A DNA stretch of 64,000 bases, from assembly GCF_052425735.1 (NCBI RefSeq), contig NC_135758.1, positions 41,912,001 to 41,976,000 of the forward strand, in the 5' to 3' direction. Source of the stretch: Oculina patagonica. Lineage: Eukaryota. Position numbers and translations under genes: made by a program. This document shows positions 34,945-38,664 of this stretch, piece by piece; within the stretch, counting starts at the first letter, position 1, and each line of letters starts with the position of its first letter. A model generated the notes under the pieces. It was given only the letters and a program-made list of their open reading frames with translations, had not been told where the DNA came from and ran no database searches.

Positions 34945-35982
34945 ATAAAAAGAAAATAATGGCTTTGACCCCCAGGCTTGTCAAAGACCAAAAGCTTTTA
35001 TTTTTCTGGGCCGGCTGTCATCGCATAAATGCATCACTACGAAGATCACACTTTGAATAAATCATTTTAGCAATTTTCATTGTAATGTAACTCTCGCTTT
35101 CCGAAATAAATACTTTTTTCGTACGTAACACTGCAGACAAATTAGTATTTCGCTGTTAAAAAATTCTTTTTAGGTCCACAGAAAACAGACTAAGGACATT
35201 TATGCGTTTTTTTCTAGTCGCTAGCCGCCATTCCGACTGAAAGTTTTCACCAAAACGAATTTTCTCTTGATAGATAGATACTTTATAGATACTTTATCAA
35301 CGTGAAATAAGCTTAGCTTTACGGCTAGTTTACAGTTATTCCATGAATTAAAACTCTTGAAATCTATATAAATCGTTTTGACAAAATTGTTATTTTTCAG
35401 TTCGTGATACAAATCAATCCTGATGGAAATCAGTAGGGACAGACGAACCTACTTCATTTTATTTATACAAAAGTGAAAAACAATCGGTCACACAATTCTC
35501 CGATTGAGCGTGTGTCGACAGATACGATTTTTTCTAACTCGCAGTTGCTCCCAGTTTATTTATATTTTCATTCTCTTTGTATTTAAGTCAACAATATTTG
35601 TAGAAATCACTTTTTGAACGATATTGCCGAATCAATTCTCAAATCCAAAGACTCTGCAATGAAAACAAAAAACTAGCTTGGCCTGTAATTAAGATTTCTA
35701 TTGATAATTCCTGATAACAGAATTTAGATGCGAAATATAGTAGTTTTTATAACTTCCCTTTCCTCCCTGATTTCTTAACTTTTAAATCTTTTGCCGTCAG
35801 GTTTTTATTAAGACGAAATCTGTAGTTGAACGTTTTTCTCTTTTATTCTCTTTAATGGGAGCTTGTTTACATTTCGATTAAAACTCGCCGGTCTTGTATA
35901 GCCGTGGGTCTTTCCGGGCTGGGCGGTTCCATTAATGTGTTCAATAAGTGTTCTTGGAGTGCAAAATAGTTTTTTTTAAAAA

Positions 35983-36016
35983 ACAGACGTTTCGGGGAAA
36001 CCCCCTTCATCAGTGT
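35983..36016 (-). ncRNA. Minimal type-I hammerhead ribozyme motif (antisense copy)
   Basis: The minus strand reads ACA CTGATGA AGGGGG TTT CCCC GAAAC GTC TGT. Confidence 0.65.
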
Positions 36017-36062
36017 AAATGTGATGTCTTAAAAGGAACGCTCCTTTTAAGACATCACATTT

Positions 36063-36094
36063 ACACTGATGAAGGGTTTCCCCGAAACGTCTGT
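36063..36094 (+). ncRNA. Minimal type-I hammerhead ribozyme motif
   Basis: ACA-CTGATGA-A-GGG TTTC CCC-GAAAC-GTC^TGT. The conserved core is intact, with stem I ACA/TGT, stem II GGG/CCC, and a palindromic ACGT in place of stem III. Confidence 0.7.
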
Positions 36095-38664
36095 TTTTTA
36101 AAAAAACTATTTTGCACTCCAAGAACACTTATTGAACACTTATTGTAACAATTGAGTGCTACGCAGCAAAACTCTTTTTATGGTTCCATTAATGTTACGG
36201 TTGTAAAAATAAGTTCGTTCAATGAATATGATAACAAAAGCGGGCTACTTTTTTGCAGTTATACCGGCCCCTCAGGCTACCATTAGACAAAAGGCCAAAA
36301 CAACAAACACTCAAATATCAATGCTAAAATATTGTACTTAAATCCATGTACCTTAATTAGAAGAACTTGGTAGTTTAAAAAACATTACGCGATTTCTGTG
36401 CGTGAAGAAAACATACAAAGGTGTATCATGCCTGATAAGATTTATGTTTTAGTATTGGTTACGTTTAAAAGTAATATATTATATCTATTCGAGATTGTAA
36501 GATCGAATATTTTCATTAAACTTATCTAATGTCTTAAGCTGATAACACTTTCCTTTTTCAGCATTTGTAATTATAACGAAGTCGAGCTTGTAATGTATAT
36601 ATTTAGCGGATACTCTCTGCAATTTAACGGAATTGAAAGCAGTTTAGATCCCGAAATAAGTTGCACTCTAAGCATATAAGGGGGCACTGGCCCATTGTTT
36701 GAGGTTAAAATAAAAGGTAGTTTCCTCTTTAGGTTATTTTAATATGGACATATTAGGCAATAGACGGCAAGATTGTGGCTCAAACGTTTCTTAGCTAACA
36801 ATTTTTCTTATATAAAAAACATTGGTTGATAAAGTTCCCGTCATTAATCAACACTTTGTCAGCGTCGTTCGCTGATTTTTTGTTTTATTAGACCTTTTTT
36901 ATGTTTTTTTTTTTTAACTGAGATTGGTTTAACTAGTTGATTAACAAAGCGCTAGAAATTAAAGCGCAAAGCATCTGGGGTCACATTTTTGAGAGGAGTT
37001 GCTGTAACATAACTATTTACTATAGCTTTCCGTTAAATGTGTACTCAGTTTAATTTATCTTTATTAAAAAATATAGTAAGAAAATATAATAAGAAATATA
37101 GAAATAATAAGTGCAAGGCATATGGGACTCATTTTTGCGAGGAGTTGCTGTAACATAACTATTTACTATAACTTTATGTTAAATGAGTATTCAGTCTATT
37201 TTATCTTTATTAAAAAAATATAGTAAGAAACATAATAAGAAATATAGTACACAAAATTTATTAATTCAACGTTGTATCGAACTCTGCTTTTAAATTCATT
37301 ATTCTGTATGTTAAACTGATTAGATCACTATTGATCCAACGTATACCGGTAGGATTATCGTCGATGGTTGCTTGCTTGAACATTTATTATAAATCTTTAT
37401 TATTTATGTAGCTATATAGTATATGGCGCATTGAATGGGAAAAAATCTGCCCAAGTATAAAGCGCGCACATACAAGTTTGTAGGAAAGTTTTTTTGTTCA
37501 ATAATCCACATTTTGCAGAATGAAGGCATATTTCTCGACGAAGTGAGAGCTGCTATTAACAAAGCGAAGAATTAAAAAAAAAGCTAGTTGTAGTCTGTTA
37601 AGTTATAAGATACGAGACCCGTAGATTGAAATAGTTATCAACATTTTCTCTTCCCTTTTTTTGTGCTCTCGTTACTTCCTTAAGGCCGTCCCCTTTTTTA
37701 AATCTGTTTACCGTCGTCCAACCGACCCAAATTTTGGGGTTTTCCAAAAAAAAAAAACTGTTTTTTTTTTTTTAGTTTTTCTTTTTTTTCTTTAGTTTTC
37801 TTAGTTTTTTAGTTCTCCTGGCGGGGGCAACTGCCCCCTCGCCCCCCCCCCCCCCCCCGCTAGGTACGGGCCTGGCTATTCCAGCGATTGCTGCGTAGAT
37901 GTTCGCAGATCGCAAAGAGTTTTGGTGGTTCATCTGCTTTCGCTTTCCTCGGCTGAGTTTAACCACTACATCGCTCTTTTCTTTCTCCATTGCCGCCATG
38001 TTGATTTTGTGACCAACTTTGGTTGTTTCCAGGCTCTCAGTTCAGCTTGCTCTTGATTTTTTTTTTAAATTTTTTTTTTATCCGACTGACCTACCGACCC
38101 AAAATTAGGAAACGCATTTGACGGTAAACGAAGAAAANNNNNNNNNNNNNNNNNNNNNNNNNNNNNNNNNNNNNNNNNNNNNNNNNNNNNNNNNNNNNNN
38201 NNNNNNNNNNNNNNNNNNNNNNNNNNNNNNNNNNNNNNNNNNNNNNNNNNNNNNNNNNNNNNNNNNNNNNNNNNNNNNNNNNNNNNNNNNNNNNGTAAAA
38301 CTTGACGGTTATTTCAGAATACTTTAAGATGAGCCTGCGGCAAGCGCTCGTGTTTTAAGCTCAAATTCCCGTCGTGGTTTATCAATGTATCGCTGTTTTT
38401 TTGTTTTTTTTTTTCATTTGTTTAATAAAGCAAAATCGGTCTATATTTAACAAATAAGGAACTCAAACCTGTTTGTTAAAGGTTACTGTACTTTCATTAA
38501 ACAGGACGGACGGGAATTTGAGAACACGAGAAAAAAATTGAAATTTGTATAATTTTATCACCTTTGCAACAGCTCGGTCATCAAGTGTCGCGCGAAGGCT
38601 GGCGCTAGGTGACTTCAAGATGGCGGACAGCTAAGAAATCTTTAATAGCTAAATTTTTACCGCA

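Follow-up and report, generated by a model that had tools for sequence, protein, structure and literature searches.

The window analysed here, 64,000 nucleotides of Oculina patagonica DNA (NCBI RefSeq assembly GCF_052425735.1, contig NC_135758.1, positions 41,912,001 to 41,976,000), contains an open reading frame (ORF) for a rhodopsin-family GPCR and, 995 bp downstream of its end, a 243-bp insert (35939-36181) between two perfect copies of a 14-bp target-site duplication (TSD). This segment forms part of one arm of an apparent inverted duplication, and the corresponding site in the other arm is empty. The features of the locus are as follows.

33745-34944, + strand: rhodopsin-family GPCR ORF of 399 codons (7tm_1, E = 1.2e-56)
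35925-35938, no strand: left TSD copy, GGTTCCATTAATGT, a direct repeat at 100%, present as a single copy at the empty site
36182-36195, no strand: right TSD copy, GGTTCCATTAATGT, a direct repeat identical to the left copy at 14/14 positions
12534-12547, - strand: empty site, on the other arm or haplotype; the 14-mer occurs once here, with 2 mismatches
29295-46466, no strand: arm B of the 95% inverted 'duplication', whose partner, arm A, spans 3346-16918

Alignment of 10581-12547 with 38137-36182 and of 12536-16137 with 35936-32338 leaves an overlap that is exactly the TSD, and the initial annotation was right that a 14-bp duplication encloses the insert and that the other arm lacks it. The insertion had also been called polymorphic, which is truly the case if the two arms are alleles. 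An alternative is that they arose by genuine segmental duplication, in inverted orientation, inside a GPCR cluster, with the insertion specific to one paralogue; the arm divergence of 5% with kilobase-scale indels is high for alleles and would fit this reading, as would the fact that, on the inner side of the arm B contig, 509 bp have no match in the continuation of arm A. We nevertheless consider a segmental duplication unlikely, given that the contig holding arm B is 17.7 kb long with a 500-N gap on either side (28286-28785 and 46468-46967), that 40/40 listed variant letters from two public runs match the arm A base and that duplicated loci on unplaced contigs indicate an assembly that was not fully purged. 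Run X6 gave a single contig over 33500-35328 at uniform depth, a mosaic of A-type and B-type letters with never both at one site, and in run X1 the A-type and B-type unitigs each had about half depth, with a roughly constant sum; both also argue against duplication. The two arms are probably alleles of a single locus, with arm B an uncollapsed haplotig, and most likely only one of the two haplotypes at that locus carries the insertion. Polymorphism was thus probably claimed correctly, the arms looking allelic, on grounds other than those initially given.

The insert consists of a long hairpin and a short unpaired tail, and each strand carries a hammerhead motif. Positions along the arms refer to a natural genomic copy of 1077 nt (L004:564-1640), which we used as a reference.

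35939-36041, - strand: inverted arm, a 3' UTR segment from a Penelope-like element (PLE), with the tail absent (reference positions about 933-1037/1045)
36038-36041, no strand: palindrome centre, ACGC
36042-36139, + strand: sense arm, a PLE 3' UTR segment (reference positions about 935-1035)
36140-36181, + strand: 3' terminal tail of 42 nt, present on the sense arm only and unpaired
36063-36094, + strand: minimal type I hammerhead motif, ACA-CUGAUGA-a-GGG/uuuc/CCC-GAAA-CG-UC-UGU
36016-35983, - strand: minimal type I hammerhead motif, as on the + strand but with stem II GGGG/guuu/CCCC and stem I ACA/UGU

As initially described, the hairpin is nearly perfect: the inverted arms 35937-36037 and 36042-36139 pair around the 4-nt centre into a stem of about 100 bp, the sole differences between them being the lengths of homopolymer runs, and the predicted RNA fold reaches -170.4 kcal/mol (z = -29.6). 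Comparison with full-length copies, which read AAGCGT-TCCTTTTAAG at this point, indicates that the ACGC centre is no designed loop and corresponds to the 4 nt (GCGT in the element) by which the inverted copy reaches further 5' than the sense copy. The unpaired 42 nt on the right side of the hairpin had not been singled out when the palindrome was first described; their length becomes 32 nt in the other register permitted by an internal ACACTTATTG duplication. Sense arm and tail together (36042-36181) are the final ~140 nt of a PLE 3' UTR, and the second arm is an inverted copy of that 3' segment without its terminal 32-42 nt. The insert itself has no ORF.

Searching the genome with the 140-nt arm, a check proposed with the initial annotation, yielded 165 candidates, of which 40 were scored and gave at least 56 matches, many of them 97-99% identical. 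Longer copies continue upstream into a common 3' UTR and then into the end of an ORF with a GIY-YIG motif, which links the family to a coding element with reverse transcriptase (RT) and nuclease domains. Together with the perfect TSD and the high identity of the copies, this linkage bears out the proposed PLE origin and recent insertion. The ORF of a longer copy of the family (L055:5757-7745) has 663 codons with DKG, LPKIHK, GRPIVS and YIDD motifs, a CX4CXXC linker and GIY-YIG, and a second copy (L004:565-1359) reads VIY-AITCCRCQSM-YIGETGRR, a GIY-YIG motif with cysteines between GIY and YIG. An ATG at L055:5523 was rejected as the start of the former ORF, as it belongs to an abundant, unrelated repeat that served as the insertion site of the PLE. 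Pfam scored GIY-YIG on the family ORF at 18.8-21.5 bits (best E = 3e-4), below the cut-off of 22.6, and did not call RVT_1 there; more than 1000 homologues of the ORF have the Pfam architecture RVT_1 (PF00078), DUF8422, GIY-YIG (PF01541) and HTH_animal. A PDB sequence search gave nothing useful. The family hammerhead lies in the 3' UTR, ~165 nt past the stop codon of the RT-GIY-YIG ORF and ~90 nt short of the 3' end. With a PLE-type RT, a C-terminal GIY-YIG domain and a hammerhead in the terminal repeat or 3' region, the family has the characters of an EN+ PLE.

No full-length intact copy of the exact family occurred among the scored candidates (at least 85% amino acid identity), and its longest copy is 5'-truncated with an interrupted hammerhead; the autonomous source is therefore inferred from relatives, among which full-length PLE copies carry a 922-amino-acid ORF between two hammerheads 3,015 bp apart. 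The same result could favour an independent family of non-autonomous units, of the non-LTR retrozyme kind or SINE-like, that spreads through self-cleaved circular RNA; the initial annotation had called the insert a non-autonomous PLE/retrozyme-like insertion. Copies are mostly short (140-320 bp), and a 2026 preprint derives animal retrozymes from PLEs (bioRxiv 10.64898/2026.07.22.740005). We regard such a family as highly unlikely, because copies begin at scattered points instead of sharing a fixed 5' end, the longer ones pass unbroken into the RT-EN ORF and the hammerhead is of the minimal PLE type rather than the canonical loop-loop type of coral retrozymes (PMC7229834). A search for tandem retrozyme arrays, likewise suggested at the outset, found no tandem sense repeats in the window or at 30 sampled loci; the insert has one sense motif per strand, in inverted order. 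What had been taken for a retrozyme-like element is better described as a 5'-truncated stub of an ORF-bearing PLE family.

Head-to-head pairs of this kind were found at more than half of the 30 sampled loci, and pairs with a tail-less inverted arm recur both in the family of the insert and in other PLE families of the genome. The inverted arm stops at reference positions 1034-1047 of 1077, 30-43 nt short, in every one of the 16 head-to-head copies examined, and the primary arms extend to 1070-1077 or further; this copy sample is small and was selected by similarity to the query. The junction point differs between copies and TSD length across the family ranges from 10 to 17 bp. Orientation is equally consistent: among the first 100 genome matches to the hammerhead motif there were 12 opposite-strand pairs within 2 kb, 12/12 of which were in the order (-,+) and 0 in the order (+,-). 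These regularities also bear on a foldback or MITE DNA transposon carrying hammerhead-like words by chance, a reading to which a near-perfect hairpin between direct duplications would appeal. Variable TSDs point to target-primed reverse transcription rather than a transposase, the shifting junction and the unpaired tail at one end do not suit such an element, and both arms correspond to 3' UTR sequence of an RT-EN element; the true foldback family at 55813-56145 looks different, with constant 159-nt arms and a 15-nt centre in all copies. We consider a transposon of this type extremely unlikely.

The insert is, with high probability, a dead-on-arrival and extremely 5'-truncated integration of an EN+ PLE, in which two 3' ends with hammerhead motifs stand head to head. 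A palindrome with hammerheads is a known kind of structure, and its formation here can be pictured as follows. The GIY-YIG nuclease would nick both target strands 14 bp apart, and cDNA synthesis would be primed on both. The first cDNA would begin at the distal start site on the RNA and include the tail; the second would begin ~30-45 nt upstream, at a start site internal to the RNA, and lack it. Both cDNAs would halt at nearly identical positions, probably on reaching the 5' end of a template RNA that was short or degraded, and a template jump would join them into a near-perfect palindrome.

An alternative route dispenses with priming on two strands: a single cDNA primed on one strand could snap back on itself and be copied. 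In favour of this possibility, 6/16 pairs (the window copy, L010, L012, L016, L021 and L030) have arms whose truncation points differ by 0-10 nt, and a copy from another PLE family (L087) is a 100% palindrome with a 9-nt centre. Near-symmetric junctions of this sort are equally expected from self-priming by snap-back, so that two-sided priming is unproven. Snap-back should, however, copy to the 5' end of the cDNA, tail included, and the inverted arm stops 30-43 nt short of it in 16/16 cases; nor does it predict the strongly asymmetric pairs (L003, L007, L011, L020, L024 and L028). In vitro, moreover, PLE protein cleaves and extends both strands and uses two RT start sites, which delimit the tail (Frangieh et al. 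2024, PMC11167929). We therefore hold snap-back to be possible but doubtful, and favour priming on both target strands from two starts.

Both hammerhead motifs noted initially, one on each strand (36063-36094, +; 35983-36016, -), have the CUGANGA, GAAA and UH boxes in type I order. The + strand motif has a GGG/CCC stem II with a UUUC loop, one G below the family norm, and a predicted cut after C36091. On the - strand an extra A follows A9 and an ACGU palindrome replaces stem III, with the predicted cut after the C at 35986. Across the genome, the pattern CTGANGA-N9-26-GAAACGTC had 2,479 matches, compared with 64 for a reversed control pattern, and the motif is more frequent than expected by chance. 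A sample of 24 distinct variants, both window arms included, was chosen by eye among the first 100 genome matches: all 24 keep the extra nucleotide after A9, the G10.1-C11.1 pair and the CG palindrome (15.2-16.2). Their stem II varies from 2 to 7 bp with 16 different 4-mers, every one paired, and stem I reaches at least 3 bp in 67% of variants (6% with mismatched partners), with a mean of 3.5 bp (0.69 bp with mismatched partners). Judged from these variants, stems I and II covary across PLE families, and the conservation of the core in copies and divergent PLE families, another check set in advance, was upheld.

The proposed Infernal check with hammerhead models, on the other hand, came back negative. 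The Rfam models Hammerhead_1, _3, _II, HH9 and HH10 gave no match at E ≤ 10 on 35500-36600 and none at the gathering threshold in the whole 64-kb window; these models demand helix III, and stem I of the family is just 3 bp. Rfam matches to miRNA and sRNA models (MIR4208 and others; 65.8 against a threshold of 140 and 44.1 against 100) fell on both strands and were rejected as a response to a generic long-hairpin shape. In folding predictions the isolated motif does no better than shuffled sequences (z = -0.03 to -0.8), compared with -170 kcal/mol for the hairpin, so that the hairpin would outcompete ribozyme folding; the initial annotation had expected double-stranded RNA to compete with it. 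In a full element, hammerheads are thought to work as dimers on multimeric transcripts; a transcript of the insert would have a lone sense copy beside a perfect antisense, and the ~100-bp stem would form. Published minimal hammerheads cleave weakly as dimers, whereas single ones showed no detectable cleavage in vitro (PMC4209133). Because each transcript would hold a single sense copy and the hairpin would sequester the motif, ribozyme activity is unlikely here, and the motifs are best viewed as passengers.

The initial annotation had further proposed that the insert acts as an allele-specific 3' regulator of the GPCR or as a source of siRNA, with read-through from the receptor gene yielding long double-stranded RNA. 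The sense arm is oriented like the GPCR ORF at its distance of 995 bp, the stem is perfect over ~100 bp and the insertion is probably allele-specific, all of which would suit such a role. Poly(A) run X24, however, left both the GPCR and the unique flanks without reads, and the proposal is unsupported. The same run had 5 reads on the repeat itself, which we assign to other copies because 4 of the 5 fit only partly. In addition, integration by-products of this kind recur at many unrelated sites and fully account for the structure, and the Rfam miRNA matches lie far under their gathering scores (65.8 compared with 140). Small-RNA run X21 had no reads here, possibly because its 75-nt reads were untrimmed or the organism was absent from the run, and is given no weight. 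Two read joints (36004 to 36074 and 36181 to 36895) have sides of just 23 and 21 nt and were rejected, being attributed to other copies. Co-option is accordingly improbable. We give a similarly low probability to the more specific idea that the read-through stem is diced into siRNAs, silencing the PLE family in trans and reducing expression from the insertion-bearing GPCR allele; if true, corals would systematically acquire hairpin-RNA loci as by-products of Penelope integration.

On the favoured reading, the tail-less inverted arms (16/16) are the footprint expected of PLE cDNA priming on both strands from two RNA starts, and a two-start picture reported in vitro for a lizard element would extend to a cnidarian. 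Short perfect palindromes with outward-facing hammerheads in this genome are Penelope integration scars, and for annotation should not be taken for ribozyme genes, miRNA precursors or regulatory hairpins; Rfam misses them. At the level of the locus, the apparent inverted duplication of a 13.5-kb GPCR-bearing block is probably an uncollapsed haplotig, which changes gene counts for the cluster, and, if so, the insertion is usable as a presence/absence marker.

Twin priming of L1 elements offers a general parallel. There, a second cDNA is primed from the other target strand and leaves an inverted 5' segment inside one TSD-flanked insertion; this segment derives from RNA further upstream, with little overlap. 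An inverted segment from a second-strand cDNA within a TSD-flanked insertion would be common to both; in the PLE insert, by contrast, a single 3' segment is represented in both arms and the second copy starts from a fixed internal position.

The canonical architecture of PLE insertions combines 5' truncation, an adjoining inverted 5'-truncated copy, a one-sided 30-40-bp tail and a variable TSD (Craig et al. 2021, PMC8557442; see also PMC11167929). The window copy and its family show all four. The insert differs in belonging to a family with no full-length member among the scored candidates and in being extreme, its copies reduced to ~100-140 nt without ORF or pLTR.

The insert motif also shows all four hallmarks of PLE minimal hammerheads (PMC4209133). 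Shared features are a type I core (CUGANGA...GAAA...UH) with a short helix I, a palindromic 15.2-16.2 (ACGU) in place of a real helix III, which implies action as a dimer, and thousands of copies per genome, largely in truncated PLEs. Compared with the Schistosoma families of that study (helix I 4-5 bp, helix II 7-8 bp), helices are shorter here (3 bp and 3-4 bp). Dual motifs on opposite strands have been reported 100-700 bp apart (Cervera & de la Pena 2014, PMC4209133), whereas the two in the insert are merely 77 nt apart within one perfect hairpin. Lastly, non-LTR retrozymes (PMC7229834; bioRxiv 10.64898/2026.07.22.740005) are likewise hammerhead-bearing, PLE-related and abundant in coral genomes; they consist of tandem direct repeats of 170-400 bp with canonical, efficient hammerheads and circular RNAs, whereas the insert contains just two minimal motifs, inverted relative to each other, from the 3' UTR of a coding element.

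Direct reading of the window upheld the initial annotation's description of the locus: an insert of 243 bp flanked by a target-site duplication (TSD), forming a hairpin around ACGC, with one hammerhead motif per strand and an empty site in the other arm of a large inverted repeat (3346–16918 versus 46466–29295, 95% identity, 13.5 kb). The hairpin arms differ only in run lengths of G, T and A.

Features of the insert and its surroundings (window positions)
35925–35938 and 36182–36195: left and right TSD copies, GGTTCCATTAATGT, bracketing the 243-bp insert
12534–12547: empty site, in the other arm of the large inverted repeat
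35937–36037 and 36042–36139: hairpin arms, almost perfectly paired
36038–36041: hairpin centre, ACGC
36140–36181: unpaired 42-nt tail on the right side, with no counterpart on the left
36063–36094, + strand: hammerhead motif, ACA-CUGAUGA-A-[stem II]-GAAA-CG-UC-UGU, stem II GGG/CCC
36016–35983, − strand: hammerhead motif, ACA-CUGAUGA-A-[stem II]-GAAA-CG-UC-UGU, stem II GGGG/CCCC
33745–34944: GPCR ORF (7tm_1, E = 1.2e-56), ending 995 bp upstream of the insert
28286–28785 and 46468–46967: gaps of 500 N each, enclosing a 17.7-kb contig that holds arm B, the insert-bearing half of the large inverted repeat

The two arms of this repeat could be paralogues or haplotypes. Public runs carrying the window stretch are labelled coral metagenome, and we aligned contigs from two public DNA runs (X1 and X6) to 33500–37500. 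All 40 of the listed variant letters were the base of arm A (the half with the empty site), variation in the two runs being exactly the difference between the arms. Over 33500–35328, X6 gave one contig of uniform depth; of the 40 sites, 24 were A-type and 16 B-type, never both. X1 carried A-type letters throughout plus a B-type form over 34176–34549, where each type ran at about half depth and their sum stayed roughly constant. Since true paralogues would show both letters at all sites in all individuals, one locus with two haplotype classes is the simplest reading, and arm B, lying between N gaps, is likely an uncollapsed haplotig. The insertion would then be truly polymorphic, as first proposed, and the GPCR count of the block would halve. 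The haplotig diagnosis is of modest added value. An X6 contig spans the left flank plus 28 nt of the insert and an X1 contig starts 6 nt within its right end (both below the 31-nt bridging threshold), so the filled allele is probably present in other samples.

Elsewhere in the assembly, PLE (Penelope-like element) loci are present as (near-)identical pairs with shared flanks (G000 C6 versus C1078, C13 versus C1841, C3 versus C1893 and C14:20.49 Mb versus 21.07 Mb), often split between one chromosome-scale and one small unplaced contig, which suggests many unpurged haplotigs. Within the window, 2.3 kb at 30061–32337 is present in arm B alone, an indel between arms or haplotypes, and 39139–39628 is a tandem duplication (132-bp offset, 94% identity). 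A repeat of ~390 bp lies at both arm ends (3346–3732 and 46075–46467), with a third copy at 48508–48875 (80% identity); together with an adjoining weak tRNA match (3272–3336, − strand, 33.4 bits), it may be a tRNA-derived SINE.

Both hammerhead cores of the insert are intact at the motif level, and stem II is GGGG/CCCC in most family copies. The Infernal-type check proposed initially gave no match between Rfam hammerhead models and the insert; such silence is to be expected when helix III is lacking. Genome-wide, CTGANGA-N9-26-GAAACGTC had 2,479 matches versus 64 for the reversed pattern, and the motif keeps its position downstream of the GIY-YIG ORF even in PLE families of just 45–75% protein identity. 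Comparison of 24 distinct motif variants confirmed that the core is conserved between copies: every variant had one unpaired A or U after A9 followed by G10.1...C11.1, a CG giving palindromic A15.1-C-G-U16.1, and a paired stem II (2–7 bp, 16 different 4-mers), and stem I reached ≥3 bp in 67% of variants versus 6% when 5′ and 3′ strands came from different variants. Cervera and de la Pena name these four features as arguments against chance and attribute dual motifs on opposite strands, 100–700 bp apart, to truncated PLEs (PMC4209133); a coral genome with >6000 type I hammerheads has been reported (PMC7229834). Because of the genomic excess, the constant position after the ORF and the variant comparison, the insert motif is assigned to the PLE minimal hammerheads already described in the literature.

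Ribozyme function of the insert motifs is improbable. A transcript of either strand would carry one sense motif with its exact antisense ~50 nt away, so a long stem should form, and the fold predicted for the palindromic stretch (−170.4 kcal/mol, z = −29.6) agrees with the competition between long dsRNA and ribozyme folding anticipated in the initial annotation. The isolated motif, with a 3-bp helix I and helix III absent, folds no better than shuffled sequence, and among published minimal hammerheads monomers did not cleave and dimers cleaved weakly (PMC4209133). The suggested role as regulator or siRNA source for the GPCR found no support in a poly(A) run: neither the GPCR nor the insert's unique flanks had any reads, and the five that fell on the repeat fitted in part and were assigned to other copies. 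A small-RNA run gave no reads at all and does not bear on the question. Nor is such a role needed to explain the insert's structure.

The window maps to C1:41.9 Mb in an assembly of 529 Mb. Scoring 40 of 165 candidates in it gave at least 56 matches to the 140-nt unit of sense arm and tail, many of them 97–99% identical; copy samples were small and picked by similarity, and counts are lower bounds. Aligned with their flanks, copies have further upstream sequence in common and scattered 5′ ends, so the 140 nt are merely the end of a longer element. At L004, a natural copy, the common part is 1,077 nt and starts within a 265-codon open frame ending in ...VIYAITCCRCQSMYIGETGRRLADRFGEH..., with a Pfam GIY-YIG match slightly under the cut-off (E = 3e-4). 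The longest relative, L055 (93% amino acid identity to L004 across the shared part), has a PLE part of 663 codons with RT motifs DKG, LPKIHK, GRPIVS and YIDD, a CX4CXXC linker and GIY-YIG. More than 1000 database homologues, those named being from corals, snail, sea urchin and shark, have the order RVT_1 + DUF8422 + GIY-YIG + HTH_animal, and a protein atlas lead agrees with this RT + GIY-YIG architecture; RT followed by C-terminal GIY-YIG defines EN+ PLEs (PMC8557442). Related full-length elements of the same genome (62% amino acid identity) carry a hammerhead on either side of a 922-aa ORF, the two motifs being separated by 3,015 bp. Among scored candidates, the insert's exact family had no intact full-length member, L055 being 5′-truncated, located within an unrelated abundant repeat and interrupted in its hammerhead by a 660-bp insertion (L055:8036–8695, ~11-bp duplication). 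That abundant repeat (L055:5201–5757 and 8914–9059; at least ~560 bp, inverted ends, 801 first-look candidates at ~90% identity) was the target of the PLE insertion and is the source of a spurious ATG in the PLE's reading frame.

The insert is thus a PLE integration stub with minimal hammerheads, a fresh instance of a known structure type; the Penelope origin proposed initially stands and its retrozyme-like part falls. On membership in each class, retrozyme, MITE and miRNA-precursor identities were rejected. The window has a second palindrome at 55813–56145 (159-nt arms of 98% complementarity around a 15-nt centre), which has no hammerhead motif and is a member of another abundant family, of foldback/MITE-like type (at least 69 matches, arm length the same in all copies).

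We mapped 30 loci onto L004:564–1640, and more than half were head-to-head pairs. In 16/16 pairs with readable ends, the inverted arm stops at reference position 1034–1047, 30–43 nt before the primary-arm end (1070–1077, at times up to 8 nt beyond), while the inner junction falls anywhere in positions 1 to 963 and TSDs measure 10–17 bp (16 copies with readable TSDs). Among the first 100 genome-wide matches, 12 opposite-strand motif pairs lay within 2 kb, all in (−,+) order, that is, with 5′ ends facing each other. Mini-palindromes are not confined to one PLE family, since L087 (G000:C1:18963669–18963843), of another family (stem II GAUCAGU/ACUGAUC), is a 100% palindrome around a 9-nt centre, its arms measuring 83 nt within the sequence covered. 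At L011 and L020, the inverted arm is just ~42 nt and begins a few nt 3′ of where the hammerhead is predicted to cut; cleaved RNA may have been the template, two cases being too few to judge.

We propose that the window insert arose by cDNA priming on both target strands, one cDNA from the distal start and the other from an internal start, which would have ended ≤4 nt apart and been joined via a template jump. The main alternative, in which one cDNA snaps back on itself, accounts for the near-symmetric junctions of 6/16 pairs but leaves the constant tail-less end and the many asymmetric pairs unexplained. Under two-strand priming, the 16/16 tail-less inverted arms would be a genomic footprint of two starts, a modest addition to what is known. 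In vitro, an Anolis PLE protein cuts both strands of its target, extends each of them and begins reverse transcription at two RNA positions, which mark the limits of the tail (PMC11167929). The pattern here matches the published PLE signature in full: strong 5′ truncation, a neighbouring inverted copy that is itself 5′-truncated, a tail of 30–40 bp at just one end and a variable TSD (PMC8557442).
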